The notes below the pieces were generated by a model. It was given only the letters and a program-made list of their open reading frames with translations. It made no database searches and was not told where the DNA came from. Below are positions 24,279-61,728 of a DNA stretch of 64,000 nt, piece by piece. Within the stretch, counting starts at the first letter, position 1, and each line of letters starts with the position of its first letter. Origin of the DNA: Octopus sinensis (Eukaryota); NCBI RefSeq assembly GCF_006345805.1, contig NC_043025.1:2728001-2792000 (forward strand), written 5' to 3'. Position numbers and translations under genes: made by a program.

Positions 24279-24350
24279 ATATCTTTACCGAAATAATATT
24301 TCGAATATTGACCAAGGAAGTTTTCAAAGTCTTCATAGATTACGGATGTT
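24279..24350 (+). CDS. Host gene exon A: LRR repeat (L)YLYRNNISNIDQGSFQSLHRLRM(L)
   Basis: 72 nt, phase 2-2. Acceptor TTCTACAG, donor GTAAGT. Fits the LxLxxNxIxxI...F..L..L consensus. Confidence 0.9.
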
Positions 24351-25765
24351 GTAAGTTCCTTTAATTTTTTATTCTATATCATGAATGTAAAATTTACATA
24401 TCTTCACTATGCTCTAGTCTGTCCTGCTTGCTTTCTCTCTCTCTCTCTCTACATCATTCTACTATCCTCTCCTCATAGTACAGGTAAAACAATAAGTAGA
24501 GGTAAAACAGGTAATTAAAGACGAAGGAGAACGACAATTAAAACTACAACAAAATCACGATGAGAAAAACAATCACAACAACAACAACAGCGACAACAAA
24601 TCAGCAACAGCAAAATTCCTGATTGGCACGAAATCATTCTGATTGCACATGAAGACGAGTGCGACTGGGATATTACATGTTTCTTCATCAAAACTTATAA
24701 ATGGGAATGTATCTTTACTTGCATTCTCCTTTTTAAACTAATATTTGATCTCTTCAAATTTGCGAGTCAGTGTCTTTCAATGTGTTCCTCTGTGTGGACG
24801 TAACTGCACAGTTCTATTCTATGCACAAATGTATGCGTGTTTGACTGTGTCCAGACGTGTGCAAGACTGTATGTTCATGCATGTGTATCAGACAGCGTGT
24901 GTCTGTGTGTGTTTTCCCTACTTCCATTCCATTCTCATACTCCGAATTATTCGTTAGAATATCTTTAAATATTTTTTTGTTTTCATCTTATTTATCATCT
25001 TTTATTGCTTTCTTCTTTTTCTTCTTTTTCCTCGTTCTCCTTTTCCTCCCCCGCCTTCTACTTCCCCTCCACTTTCTACCTCTAGTACTTCTTCCTCCTT
25101 CTCCTCCTCTCCTTTCTCTTCTTCCCCTACTACACTACTACTACTACTACACCTTCTACTTCTGTATATCACCCTTCCTAATTCTCATCGTATTATTCTT
25201 CCTCCTCCTCCTCTTCTTCTTTCTCTTCTACCCCTACCCCTAAACTACTACTACTAATACTACTACTACAAATACTACAACTACTACTACTACTACTACT
25301 ACTAATACTACACCTTCTACTTCTATATATCACCCTTCCTAATTCTCATCGTATTATTCTTCCTCCTCCTCCTCTTCTACTTTCTCTTCTTCCCCTACCC
25401 CTCCACTACTACTACTACTACTACTACTACTACTGCAACTACTCTACTACTACTACTACTACTACTACTACTACTACACCTTCTACTATCTCATCCTTCC
25501 TAATTCTCACCGTATTCTTCTTTCTCCTTTTCTCCGTCGTCACCATTCTTCCTTCCCCTAGTTTAATTCTCCTCACTCAATATTAACAACATATATTCAT
25601 CTGCTGCATCATTATACGATCAGCAATATCATCCAACGATAATTCTAATTACTTATTGTCTTCCCATTTTGCTTTTCTTCCAACTTTTGTCTTCTCTAAT
25701 TCATAATCTCTCTCTCTCTCTCTCTCTCTCTCTCTCCCTCAGTTTCTGTTTAAATCTATTTTAGA

Positions 25766-28700
25766 GTGTTTGAGTATGCGTGTGAAGGTATGTGTGTGAA
25801 GGTATGCGTGTGAAGGTATGTGTGTGAAGGTATGTGTGTGAAGGTATGTGTGTGAAGGTATGTGTGTGAAGGTATGCGTGTGAAGGTATGCGTGTGAAGG
25901 TATGCGTGTGAAGGTATGCGTGTGAAGGTATGCGTGTTTGAGTATGCGTGTGAAGGTATGTGTGTGAAGGTATGCGTGTGAAGGTATGCGTGTGAAGGTA
26001 TGCGTGTTTGAGTATGCGTGTGAAGGTATGTGTGTGAAGGTATGCGTGTGAATGTATGCGTGTTTGAGTATGCGTGTGAAGGTATGTGTGTGAAGGTATG
26101 TGTGTGAAGGTATGCGTGTGAAGGTATGCGTGTGAAGGTATGCGTGTGAAGGTATGCGTGTGAAGGTATGCGTGTTTGAGTATGCGTGTGAAGGTATGTG
26201 TGTGAAGGTATGCGTGGGAAGGTATGCGTGTGAAGGTATGCGTGTTTGAGTATGCGTGTGAAGGTATGTGTGTGAAGGTATGCGTGTGAAGGTATGCGTG
26301 TGAAGGTATGCGTGTTTGAGTATGCGTGTGAAGGTATGTGTGTGAAGGTATGCGTGAGAAGGTATGTGTGTGAAGGTATGCGTGAGAAGGTATGTGTGTG
26401 AAGGTATGCGTGTGAAAGTATGCGGGTTTGAGTATGTGTGTGAAGGTATGCTTGTGAAGGTATGCGTGTGAAGGTATGCGTGTGAAGGTATGTGTGTGAA
26501 GGTATGCGTGTGAAGGTATGCGTGTGAAGGTATGTGTTGAAGGTATGAGTGTGAAGGTTGTGAAGGTATGTGTGTGAAGGTATGCGTGTGAGGTATGCGT
26601 GTGAAGGTATGCGTGTTTGAGTATGTGTGTGAAGGTATGCGTGTTTGAGTATGCGTGTGAAGGTATGTGTGTGAAGGTATGCGTGTGAAGGTATGCGTGT
26701 GAAGGTATGTGTGTGAAGGTATGTGTGTGAAGGTATACGTGTGAAGGTATGTGTGTGAAGGTATGCGTGTGAAGGTATGCGTGTGAAGGTATACGTGTTT
26801 GAGTATGCGTGTGAAGGTATGCGTGTGAAGGTATGTGTGTGAAGGTATGCGTGTGAAGGTATGCGTGTTTGAGTATGTGTTTGAAGGTATGCGTGTGAAG
26901 GTATGTGTGTGAAGTTATGCGTGTGAAGGTATGTGTGTGAAGTTATGCGTGTGAAGGTATGCGTGTTTGAGTATGTGTGTGAAGGTATGTGTGTGAAGGT
27001 ATGCGTGTGAAGTTATGCGTGTTTGAGTATGTGTGTGAAGGTATGCGCGTGAAGGTATGTGTGTGAAGGTAATGCGTGTGAAGGAATGCGTGTGAAGGTA
27101 TGCGTGTGAAGGTATGCGTGTGAAGGTATGTGTGAGAAGGTACGCCTGTGAAGGTATGCGTGTTTGAGTATGTGTGTGAAGGTATGCGTGTGAAGGTATG
27201 CGTGTGAAGGTATGCGCGTTAAGGTATGTGTGTGAAGATATGCGTGTGAAGGTATATGTGTGAAGGTATGTGTGTGAAGGTATGCGTGTGAAGGTATGCG
27301 TGTGAAGGTATGTGTGTGAAGGTATGCGTGTGAAGGTATGCGTGTGAAGGTATGTGTGTGAAGGTATGCGTGTGAAGGTATGCGAGTTTGAGTATGTGTG
27401 TGAAGGTATGCGTGTGAAGGTATGTGTGTGAAGGTATGCGTGTGAAGGTATGCGTGTGAAGGTATGCGTGTTTGAGTATGTGTGTGAAGGTATGTGTGTG
27501 AAGGTATGTGTGTGAAGGTATGCGTGTGAAGGTATGCGTGTTTGAGTATGTGTGTGAAGGTATGCGTGTGAAGGTATGCGTGTGTGAAGGTATGCGTGTG
27601 AAGGTATGTGTGTGAAGGTATGCGTGTTTGAGTATGTGTGTGAAGGTATGCGTGTGAAGGTATGCGTCTTTGAGTATGTGTGTGAAGGTATGCGTGTGAA
27701 GGTATGTGTGTGAAGGTATGCGTGTGAAGGTATGCGTGTTTGATTATGTGTGTGAAGGTATGCGTGTGAAGGTATGCGTGTGAAGGTATGCGTGTGAAGG
27801 TATGCGTTGTTGTGAAGGTATGTGTGTGAAGGTACGCCTGTGAAGGTATGCGTGTTTGAGTATGTGTGTGAAGGTATGCGTGTGAAGGTATGCGTGTGAA
27901 GGTATGCGTGTGAAGGTATGCGTGTGAAGGTATGCGCGTGAAGGTATGTGTGTGAAGGTATGCGTGTGAAGTGAAGGTATATGTGGAAGGTATGTGTGTA
28001 AAGGTATGCATGTGAAGGTATGCGTGTGAAGGTATGCCTGTGAAGGTATGCGTGTGAAGGTATGCGTGTGAAGGTATGTGTGTGAAGGTATGCGTGTGAG
28101 AGTATGCGTGTTTGAGTATGTGTGTGAAGGTATGCGTGTGAGGGTATGTGTGTGAAGGTATGCGTGTGAAGGTATGCGTGTGAAGGTATGCGTGTTTGAG
28201 TATGTGTGTGAATGTATGCGTGTGAAGGTATGTGTGTGAAGGTATGCGTGTGAAGGTATGCGTGTTTCAGTATGTGTGTGAAGGTATGCGTTTAAAGGTA
28301 TGCGTGTGAAGGTATGCTTGTGAAGGTATGCGTGTTTGAGTAATTGTGTGAAGGTATGCGTGTGAAGGTATGTGTGTGAACATATGCGTGTGAAGGTATA
28401 CGTGTGAAGGTATGCGTGTGAAGGTATGCGTGTGAAGGTATGCGTGTTTGAGTATGTGTGTGAAGGTATCCGTGTGAAGGTATGCGTGTGAAGGTATGCG
28501 TGTGAAGGTATGCGTGTGAAGGTATGCGTGTTTGAGTATGTGTGTGAAGGTATGCCTGTGAAGGTATGCGCGTGAAGGTATGTGTGTGAAGGAATGCTTG
28601 TGAATGTATGCGTGTTTGATTATGTGTGTGGAGGTATGCGTGTGAAGGTATGTGTGTGAAGGTATGTGCGTGAAGGTATGCGTGTGAAGGTATGTGTGTG

Positions 28701-61089: not shown

Positions 61090-61552
61090 GATTGAGAGAG
61101 CAGTGAATGCCATCAAAGTGACACTGGGGTAAAATATACGAAGCCCAGTATACCCATCATGACTACCCTTCTGATAAGGGTACACCAGGCACATGCATCA
61201 CAACCATCCCACTCAAAAGGTCCCTGATTAAGGGTTGTTTAAGGATGTTGAATGAAACACCTATGTTTCCAGAGGTGAATTATTCAAACCCCAAAGAATC
61301 CCTCTCAACACATGGCTATGATGCTCCCCCACTACTTCTGCTCATGATCAGAGATGCACATATTGTCATCCACTAAGGGACATGCTCAACTGGTTAAGGT
61401 CAAACAACTGACAAGCAAATCTGTGGTATTGAGCAGAATATTTGCCGTAGCCCATCTTTTATACCAAGACAAAACAATGTACACGATAACACCTCCAATC
61501 GGTTCAGATCAGAAGCCATGAGAGCCACTGCCTGGTACTGTATCAGGGCATT
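61090..61552. mobile_element. Second copy of the 49706-50262 dispersed repeat, internally deleted
   Basis: Direct sequence similarity at both ends. Confidence 0.7.
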
Positions 61553-61675
61553 TATTGTTATTATTATTATTAGTAGTAGTAGTAGTAGTAGTAGTAGTAG
61601 TAGTAGTAGTAGTAGTAGTAGTACTAGTAGTAGTATTATATCATTCATATTCCTATATATATCTGGCTTTTTCAG

Positions 61676-61728
61676 ATGCAGCAAGAGTTATTACACGTGA
61701 CGGCAATATTCAGAGTTGAATATTGTGG
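61676..61728 (+). CDS. Host gene exon I (probable): MQQELLHVTAIFRVEYC(G)
   Basis: 53 nt, phase 0-2. Acceptor TTTTTCAG, donor GTGAGC. In frame with exon H; an alternative donor GTGGGT lies 4 nt upstream. Confidence 0.6.

Follow-up and report, generated by a model that had tools for sequence, protein, structure and literature searches.

Gene Structure and Genomic Context

The stretch of Octopus sinensis DNA described here, termed the window, is 64,000 nucleotides long (assembly GCF_006345805.1, contig NC_043025.1, positions 2,728,001 to 2,792,000 of the forward strand) and consists of AT-rich, repeat-laden animal DNA. Between positions 24279 and 61728, its + strand carries nine short exons of a gene for an adhesion G-protein coupled receptor (GPCR), each of them preceded by an AG acceptor and followed by a GT donor. 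With a probability of about 0.9, the interval is read as the first nine coding exons of an O. sinensis adhesion (class B2) GPCR gene, whose ectodomain joins leucine-rich repeats (LRRs) and an LRRCT-type cap to a Ly6/uPAR (LU, or three-finger) domain and whose family is expanded in octopuses.

The exons are listed in Table 1. Their phases, computed from the exon lengths, run 2-2-2-2-2-1-0-1-0-2, exactly as given in an earlier sequence-only reading of the window, which had also proposed that nine GT-AG exons splice in frame. The splice sites, the open frame and the identity with a RefSeq protein described below bear this out. The joined frame yields a product with the pattern LQCQTC...CPGSM|PVC...KSCSTYRKC...CCFGNLCN. 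The first exon lies between a ctacag|A acceptor and a TT|gtaagt donor.

Table 1. Exons and other features of the window, followed by domains of the annotated product. Positions refer to the window unless residues of P0180 (XP_036370807.1) are given.
Feature	Position	Strand	Length, phase or score	Sequence or remark
LRR exon 1	24279..24350	+	72 nt, phase 2 in/out	(x)YLYRNNISNIDQGSFQSLHRLRM(L)
LRR exon 2	40100..40171	+	72 nt, phase 2	TLVHNKIEKVERGIFQGLNNLQQ(L)
LRR exon 3	41055..41126	+	72 nt, phase 2	YLNGNNISSIEQGSFQGLPRLQQ(L)
LRR exon 4	43427..43498	+	72 nt, phase 2	YLNNNSIQKYEDGAFFFLPSIAG(I)
LRRCT-type cap exon	52092..52249	+	158 nt, phase 2 to 1	NLENNDRMVCGCHLPAFVRHIKKVYSRTVDVNGTCEEAPGKLIPILKYSQCQ
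LU exon a	54335..54426	+	92 nt, phase 1 to 0	NYSLFQRNLQCQTCSKMICNDLDVTRCPGSM
LU exon b	56127..56310	+	184 nt, phase 0 to 1	PVCRFALSTNGVTLKTEKSCSTYRKCVQAMRDNTAACDKWPSGTTCTGCCFGNLCNKNDFV(G)
Post-LU α/β domain, first exon	58109..58191	+	83 nt, phase 1 to 0	GWTKSFVFHLTFKKFNDYKIPTVNISRA
Post-LU α/β domain, second exon	61676..61728	+	53 nt, phase 0 to 2	MQQELLHVTAIFRVEYCG
Assembly gap	22936-23035		100 N	1.2 kb upstream of the first LRR exon
Satellite in first intron	25774..39112		13.3 kb, about 955 copies, 88% matches	14-nt unit GTATGCGTGTGAAG; non-coding
HRM	P0180 residues 326-392		E 1e-3	below Pfam cut-off
GAIN	P0180 residues 415-621		E 3.6e-4	below Pfam cut-off
GPS	P0180 residues 648-691		E 1e-11	
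7tm_2	P0180 residues 704-937		E 2.9e-37	
GPS site	window-equivalent 74721-74873 (L002 60376-60528)			P0180 residues ~676-690

In tblastn searches with Octopus paralogs, every window exon of at least 24 codons is matched. The second LRR exon is identical (100%) to residues 3-26 of the family protein P0199, the cap exon matches paralogs with E-values down to 1e-21, and the first exon after the LU domain matches the paralog P0005 (74% identity, E 2e-10). The paralogous gene P0006, at locus L001, likewise has LRR exons of 72 nt, its LRRCT exon is comparable, and the second part of its LU domain also has an exon to itself. Over residues 23-286, the nine-exon peptide shows 100% identity to residues 1-264 of XP_036370807.1 (P0180), annotated in O. 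sinensis as “adhesion G-protein coupled receptor G6-like isoform X2”; the eight junctions therefore all coincide with those of the NCBI gene model. This identity, the paralog matches and the Pfam LRR_8 match described below dismiss a chance assembly of nine exons.

Two further stretches were considered and left out of the gene. In the exon-like stretch at 43900-44050 (…DDCCDYL…), a stop codon interrupts the required phase, and no paralog matches the stretch. Position 55413, which falls between the LU exons, carries a motif resembling an LRR; this too is without a paralog match and is dismissed as chance.

The annotated gene lies in locus L002 (CM016887.1:2742346-2827578), which covers the window from position 14346 on, so that a window position equals the L002 position plus 14345. 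The locus was mapped with isoform X1 of the same gene (XP_029652812.2), the two isoforms being 988 and 989 amino acids long. The start codon of the annotated coding sequence is the ATG at 24346-24348, which falls within the first LRR exon, and the gene ends at window-equivalent 89578, or 25.6 kb beyond the end of the window. The frame of 989 codons runs unbroken through at least 18 mapped exons. Nine of these lie in the window and make up about 27% of the coding sequence; the last of them, at 61676-61728, is followed by the next mapped exon at window-equivalent 65353. The exons for the remainder of the α/β domain and for everything after it are located 1.3 to 25.6 kb downstream of the window end. 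From N- to C-terminus, the product comprises the LRRs, the LRRCT-type cap, the LU domain, an α/β domain of about 100 residues, HormR, GAIN with its GPS, 7tm_2 and a short tail.

Domains of the Receptor

The spliced peptide matches the Pfam families LRR_8 (E 1.9e-27) and LRR_4 (E 3e-13) through tandem LxxLxLxxNxL repeats, and in P0180, LRR_8 covers residues 2-57 (E 4e-27). The four LRRs first seen in the sequence are thus borne out by LRR_8. The LRRs are followed by a cap with a CxC...C...C pattern. This four-cysteine, LRRCT-type pattern is conserved in all paralogs, its cysteines being nearly invariant in the family, and LRR proteins with caps in the PDB align to about residue 100 of P0180. 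The proposed LRRCT is favoured to this extent, with no match to a Pfam LRRCT family on either the spliced peptide or P0180.

The two LU exons together encode a module of 12 cysteines that closes with CCFGNLCN. The first of them encodes the first finger with its extra disulfide, as well as an invariant YSLFQ linker. In an alignment of 26 family members, 11 cysteines are invariant and the twelfth and the closing N nearly so, with a closing consensus of CCxGNLCN. When the family profile of this domain (A4) was compared with all PDB sequences, the top match was human LYPD1/Lynx2 (6zss; E 6.4e-4, positions 9-87), which aligns end to end with the cysteines in register. At E<=10, the profile reaches seven PDB sequences, each of which is an LU protein (among them LYPD1, ACVR1, LYPD6, SLURP1 and a neurotoxin chain).

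Structural comparison leans the same way. An AlphaFold2 (AF2) model was made of the cap plus LU of the paralog P0013, in which the LU part has a predicted confidence (pLDDT) of 70-86. A Foldseek search with this model ranked Lynx2 (6zss) first, with a probability of 1.00, a TM-score of 0.55 on the target, a root-mean-square deviation of 3.0 Å and a weak E-value of 0.056. The following ranks are mostly TGF-β-receptor ectodomains, three-finger toxins, LYPD6B and Lynx1, and about two thirds of the top 50 matches are three-finger proteins. A further line of evidence is the SUPERFAMILY entry SSF57302, which we take to be the snake-toxin-like superfamily. It was assigned to residues 136-215 of the O. 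bimaculoides protein A0A0L8GYR2, a member of the “group 3” receptors of Ritschard et al. 2019, in the InterProScan results of that study; the entry stands in supplementary file 3 only and is not mentioned in the paper text (PMC6408891). From the cysteine framework, the PDB profile match, the Foldseek ranking and the published SSF57302 entry, the identification of the cysteine-rich module as an LU domain, as the sequence-only reading had it, is well supported. The octopus LU domain is, more specifically, Lynx2/LYPD1-like.

The frame of the second LU exon remains open for 20 codons beyond its donor, at 56311-56372 (GKCFSLFNITPLGLLQIDSQ*), and the extension is like the C-terminus of O. vulgaris P0007 (GKCYLLSNITLTSLLQIDS). 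This read-through could represent a short isoform made by intron retention, or simply intron sequence that young paralogs still have in common.

The last two window exons open a module of about 100 residues that is conserved in most paralogs. In an AF2 model of the paralog P0017, the post-LU module is a β-α-β-β-α-α-β sandwich (pLDDT 71-93). In a Foldseek search with the two-domain model of P0017 (LU plus α/β), all matches were to generic folds of the ferredoxin-like kind, at E>=2e-3, with no SEA domain among them, and a profile of the α/β domain compared with the PDB found nothing relevant. The module stands ahead of HormR, in the position held by SEA in ADGRG6. It may be called “SEA-like” as a resemblance of modelled topology and of position only. 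The further ectodomain segment anticipated after the LU domain is real, with the α/β domain and HormR following.

The remainder of the receptor was analysed with Pfam on the 988-residue P0180 (Table 1). HRM and GAIN fall below the cut-off; GPS and 7tm_2 are clear, and the seven-transmembrane (7TM) exons lie at window-equivalent 77784-86575. In the PDB comparison, ADGRG2 (4e-59) and ADGRG6 (8e-57) match the GAIN+7TM part, aligned from residues 449-468 onward, and the ADGRG6 ectodomain entry 6v55 aligns over residues 378-691. The product has both the 7tm_2 domain and the GAIN with a GPS directly before the first transmembrane segment that define class B2. It had been guessed that an LRR-bearing adhesion GPCR continues past the window end with GAIN/7TM exons, and the downstream extension recommended for finding GPS and 7tm_2 uncovered both in the annotated product.

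The Octopus Family

A search with the spliced peptide retrieved 18 Octopus proteins with 44-73% identity, most of which share the junction between the cap and the cysteine-rich module, and a second search, for longer relatives, retrieved P0180. The LRR-LRRCT-LU arrangement, usually followed by the α/β domain, HormR, GAIN and 7TM, is common to at least 60 annotated protein models, which come from three Octopus species. Among 320 fetched proteins, hidden Markov models of the LU and post-LU domains matched 70 and 58, respectively, and all matches with a source name come from O. sinensis, O. vulgaris or O. bimaculoides. In a profile search of 1.84 billion representatives, the LRR columns drew in giant LRR proteins, leaving about a dozen useful members. 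A whole-length, word-based search with the most divergent member, a method that can miss distant relatives, found no protein with the full architecture outside Octopus.

The full-length members P0074, P0132, P0181, P0191 and P0194 have LRR, GPS and 7tm_2 matches in Pfam as well as a match to the LU model, and P0074 additionally carries a C-terminal Death domain. There are also short forms. P0001 and P0008 consist of a signal peptide, LRRNT, LRRs, cap and LU, and end a few residues after the LU domain. They show no transmembrane segment and no clear glycosylphosphatidylinositol (GPI) signal, and may be secreted LRR-LU proteins from the same family. Some family models (P0166, P0167, P0206) contain two or three tandem LU domains, and in others (P0029, P0142 and others) HormR is followed by another copy of the post-LU α/β domain. 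Such models reflect either genuine duplication of exons or the merging of adjacent genes.

Several family members share a 17-Mb chromosome record with the window gene. An octopus-specific expansion of adhesion GPCRs, “group 3”, was described by Ritschard et al. 2019, with members showing enrichment in axial nerve cord, suckers and skin of O. bimaculoides (PMC6408891). The window gene appears to belong to this tandemly clustered, octopus-expanded family. The likeness extends to Octopus class B2 receptors with a GPS and an adhesion 7TM, LRRs in some members and co-localised genes, and one O. bimaculoides member of group 3 has a Death domain, the same LRR...7tm_2...Death layout being found in P0074. 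The paper differs in reporting LRR, GPS, 7TM and Death only, the LU domain being represented by the single SSF57302 table line, and O. sinensis was outside its data set, so that the window gene is not placed in its tree. Group 3 also includes one LRR-GPS-7TM sequence from Euprymna scolopes (PMC6408891); therefore, the basic receptor may predate the octopus expansion.

LU domains on 7TM receptors have been reported elsewhere. The starfish GPCR-like protein LyAr2 (XP_033635539.1) carries, in its N-terminal extracellular part, an LU domain that is most similar to Lynx2 (PMC11595613). In a 2026 report, LU-bearing GPCRs are described in molluscs and arthropods, and the legend of the domain figure lists LRR, LU, GPS and 7TM GPCR; its authors consider that the occurrences in different phyla are possibly independent (PMC13719153). 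Both accounts agree with the octopus receptors in an extracellular N-terminal LU domain on a 7TM receptor (PMC11595613, PMC13719153). The novelty implied by the sequence-only reading does not survive this record, in which the family expansion dates from 2019 and the descriptions of LU-bearing GPCRs from 2024 and 2026.

Relation to Known Receptors and Ly6/uPAR Proteins

The product can be compared with two groups of adhesion GPCRs. ADGRG6 has the domain order SEA-HormR-GAIN-7TM. ADGRG6 (GPR126) and ADGRG2 are the best PDB sequence matches for the GAIN and 7TM parts, the octopus order α/β domain-HormR-GAIN-7TM parallels that of ADGRG6, and the RefSeq name is G6-like. The two differ at the N-terminus, which is LRR-LRRCT-LU in octopus and CUB-PTX in ADGRG6, and neither by sequence nor by Foldseek could the octopus α/β domain be related to SEA domains.

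Vertebrate ADGRA receptors follow the order LRR-LRRCT-Ig-HormR-GAIN-7TM. ADGRA2 and ADGRA3 (GPR124/GPR125) share with the octopus protein the N-terminal LRRs with an LRRCT-type cap, one small β-rich module, HormR, GAIN and 7TM. Precomputed Pfam annotation places GAIN_ADGRA3 on the window gene and on paralogs, and the most divergent octopus member is named ADGRA3 by NCBI. Unlike ADGRA, the octopus receptor has the LU plus the α/β domain at the position of the Ig domain, with no Pfam match to an Ig family in P0180, so that the order of domains departs from that of ADGRA, and among solved structures its 7TM comes nearest to the G subfamily.

The LU domain itself shares with LYPD1/Lynx2 and other Ly6/uPAR proteins the cysteine framework, the extra first-finger disulfide and the C-terminal CCxxxCN, and LYPD1 tops both its profile and its structural matches. 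Ly6/uPAR proteins, however, are single-domain and GPI-anchored or secreted, whereas the octopus LU domain is an internal module of a receptor of about 1000 residues, with neither a signal peptide nor a GPI signal of its own.

Alternative Explanations

A number of observations speak against the interpretation given above. The junctions rest on a Gnomon model and paralog conservation. The 92-residue LU segment matches no Pfam family at E<=1 (UPAR_LY6, Toxin_TOLIP and Activin_recp included), and at E<=0.1 the short paralogs gave no LU, HRM or GAIN match. The domain check proposed for the spliced peptide, made here with Pfam, succeeded for the LRRs and failed for the LU domain, which standard Pfam annotation misses. 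In the three-finger comparison with the P0013 model, the Foldseek E-values are all above 0.05 and none is <=1e-3, and the AF2 models are of moderate quality (mean pLDDT 66-75) and were made from paralogs instead of the window protein. The annotated product lacks a signal peptide, an LRRNT and earlier LRRs, and no signal-peptide, LRRNT or LRR exon was detected in window positions 1-24278. Its GPS reads CSCDYL|TSFALL, with Y replacing the catalytic H of the canonical HL|T.

The silence of Pfam, the Foldseek E-values, the moderate pLDDT and a long helix after finger 2 would fit some other small disulfide-rich fold (hinge, EGF/TNFR-like) that shares only a CCxxxxCN-like ending. This is very unlikely when all seven PDB sequences reached by the LU profile are LU proteins, the best of them end to end in register, when the bulk of the leading Foldseek matches are three-finger proteins, when SSF57302 was recorded on a paralog independently by other authors, and when a truncated paralog bears the NCBI name LYPD1-like. 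The LU exons could also be pictured as a separate, nested Ly6-like gene, secreted or GPI-anchored, with the fused models being annotation artefacts. In a typical Ly6 gene, the signal peptide is followed by a phase-1 intron and the LU domain is divided between two exons; short database models exist, e.g., P0014 “LYPD1-like” (151 amino acids) and P0007, whose end the 20-codon read-through resembles. Yet the first LU exon begins NYSLFQRNLQC, with neither a Met nor a signal peptide, dozens of independent models, belonging to three species, share the junction ...YSQCQ|NYSLFQ..., and YSLFQ is kept unchanged by paralogs with only 44-75% identity. The short models begin MMCGCHL, inside the LRRCT exon, and are therefore truncated versions of the same fusion, while the read-through tail is unconvincing as a GPI signal. 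A nested gene is hence barely credible, and the LU domain is regarded as part of the receptor.

The 5′ end presents a different difficulty. The first residues of the annotated protein, MLTLVHNK, fall within an LRR. A signal peptide is required for a large ectodomain rich in disulfides; therefore, either the RefSeq model is 5′-incomplete or the copy is defective. In the latter case, the locus would be a 5′-truncated or non-functional duplicate (a young pseudogene or fragment), coding at most for a protein unable to enter the secretory pathway. The internal start, the lack of upstream exons in the window and the Y at the GPS are in keeping with this, as is the size of a recently duplicated family in which dead copies are expected. 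When 60 family proteins were used to look for upstream exons, nothing came out but spurious alignments to the translation of the 14-nt satellite, and the paralogs P0001, P0008, P0029 and P0075 do carry a signal peptide and LRRNT. Against a defective copy stands the 989-codon frame, intact across at least 18 exons, and the partial O. vulgaris protein P0198 clusters with the window gene's product at >=90% identity, which fits conservation across species. The first LRR exon has a good acceptor and 22 in-frame LRR codons ahead of the annotated Met, and therefore upstream exons are expected. The region upstream, positions 1-24278, holds retrotransposon fragments and microsatellites, an assembly gap lies just ahead of the first exon (Table 1), and introns here reach 15 kb, so that the missing 5′ exons may be in the 100-N gap or beyond the window start. 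A defective copy is thus considered unlikely, and the RefSeq model is probably 5′-incomplete. As for the GPS, the paralogs P0074 and P0132 keep NHL|TSF, and with YL/T in place of HL/T, autoproteolysis is therefore uncertain in the window gene; it may have been lost in this copy, giving a non-cleaving receptor. Cleavage at the GPS is not required for membership of the adhesion GPCRs.

Repeats and Other Features of the Window

The satellite within the first intron (Table 1) has a GC skew of about 0.78. It yields long spurious minus-strand open reading frames (ORFs; HTHTFTRIPSHAYL...), which align weakly to LRR proteins by periodicity. ORFs whose translations appear to contain motifs like those of non-LTR retrotransposon reverse transcriptases are located at 777-1136 (-), 12068-12959 (+), 19947-21343 (-) and 47600-48784 (-), one of them in the intron that separates LRR exon 4 from the cap exon. 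One repeat element is present in two copies, at ~49913-50215 and ~61245-61521, with the translations ...THGYDAPPLLLL.IRDAHIV.H and MHI.S.TKGHAQLVKVKQLTSKSVVLSRIFAVAHLLYQDKTMY. Long trinucleotide microsatellites stand on either side of each copy, and the exon at 61676-61728 has the second copy just upstream of it.

Proposed Function and Significance

If this receptor works as other adhesion GPCRs do, its LRR-cap-LU module would form the distal, outward-facing surface for ligand binding or adhesion, and the α/β and HormR domains would serve as a stalk. The GAIN domain would hold the tethered peptide TSFALL..., and the binding of a ligand or the application of force would lead to activation of the 7TM core. 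Ly6 proteins elsewhere act as separate, membrane-tethered regulators of receptors. It has been considered, as a speculation of low probability, that the fused Lynx2-like LU domain might be a built-in modulatory or ligand module acting in cis, which together with the octopus expansion and secreted decoys of the P0001/P0008 type might provide combinatorial recognition in the arm nervous system and suckers.

The description of this gene as hidden does not stand, as RefSeq already holds a model named adhesion GPCR G6-like. The gene, its family and its class of architecture are on record; the gene is real but known. Reading of the raw sequence alone nevertheless recovered the correct nine-exon model and predicted the remaining architecture. 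The biological addition is small, given a gene present in RefSeq, a family published in 2019 and LU-bearing GPCRs reported in 2024 and 2026. What is new here is the reading of the octopus “G6-like” receptors as LRR-LRRCT-LU-α/β-HormR-GAIN-7TM, the Lynx2-like nature of their LU domain, and the weak 5′ end of the RefSeq model, which adjoins an assembly gap. If the family acts in recognition in suckers and in the axial nerve cord, the LRR-LU part would be the obvious piece with which to search for ligands.

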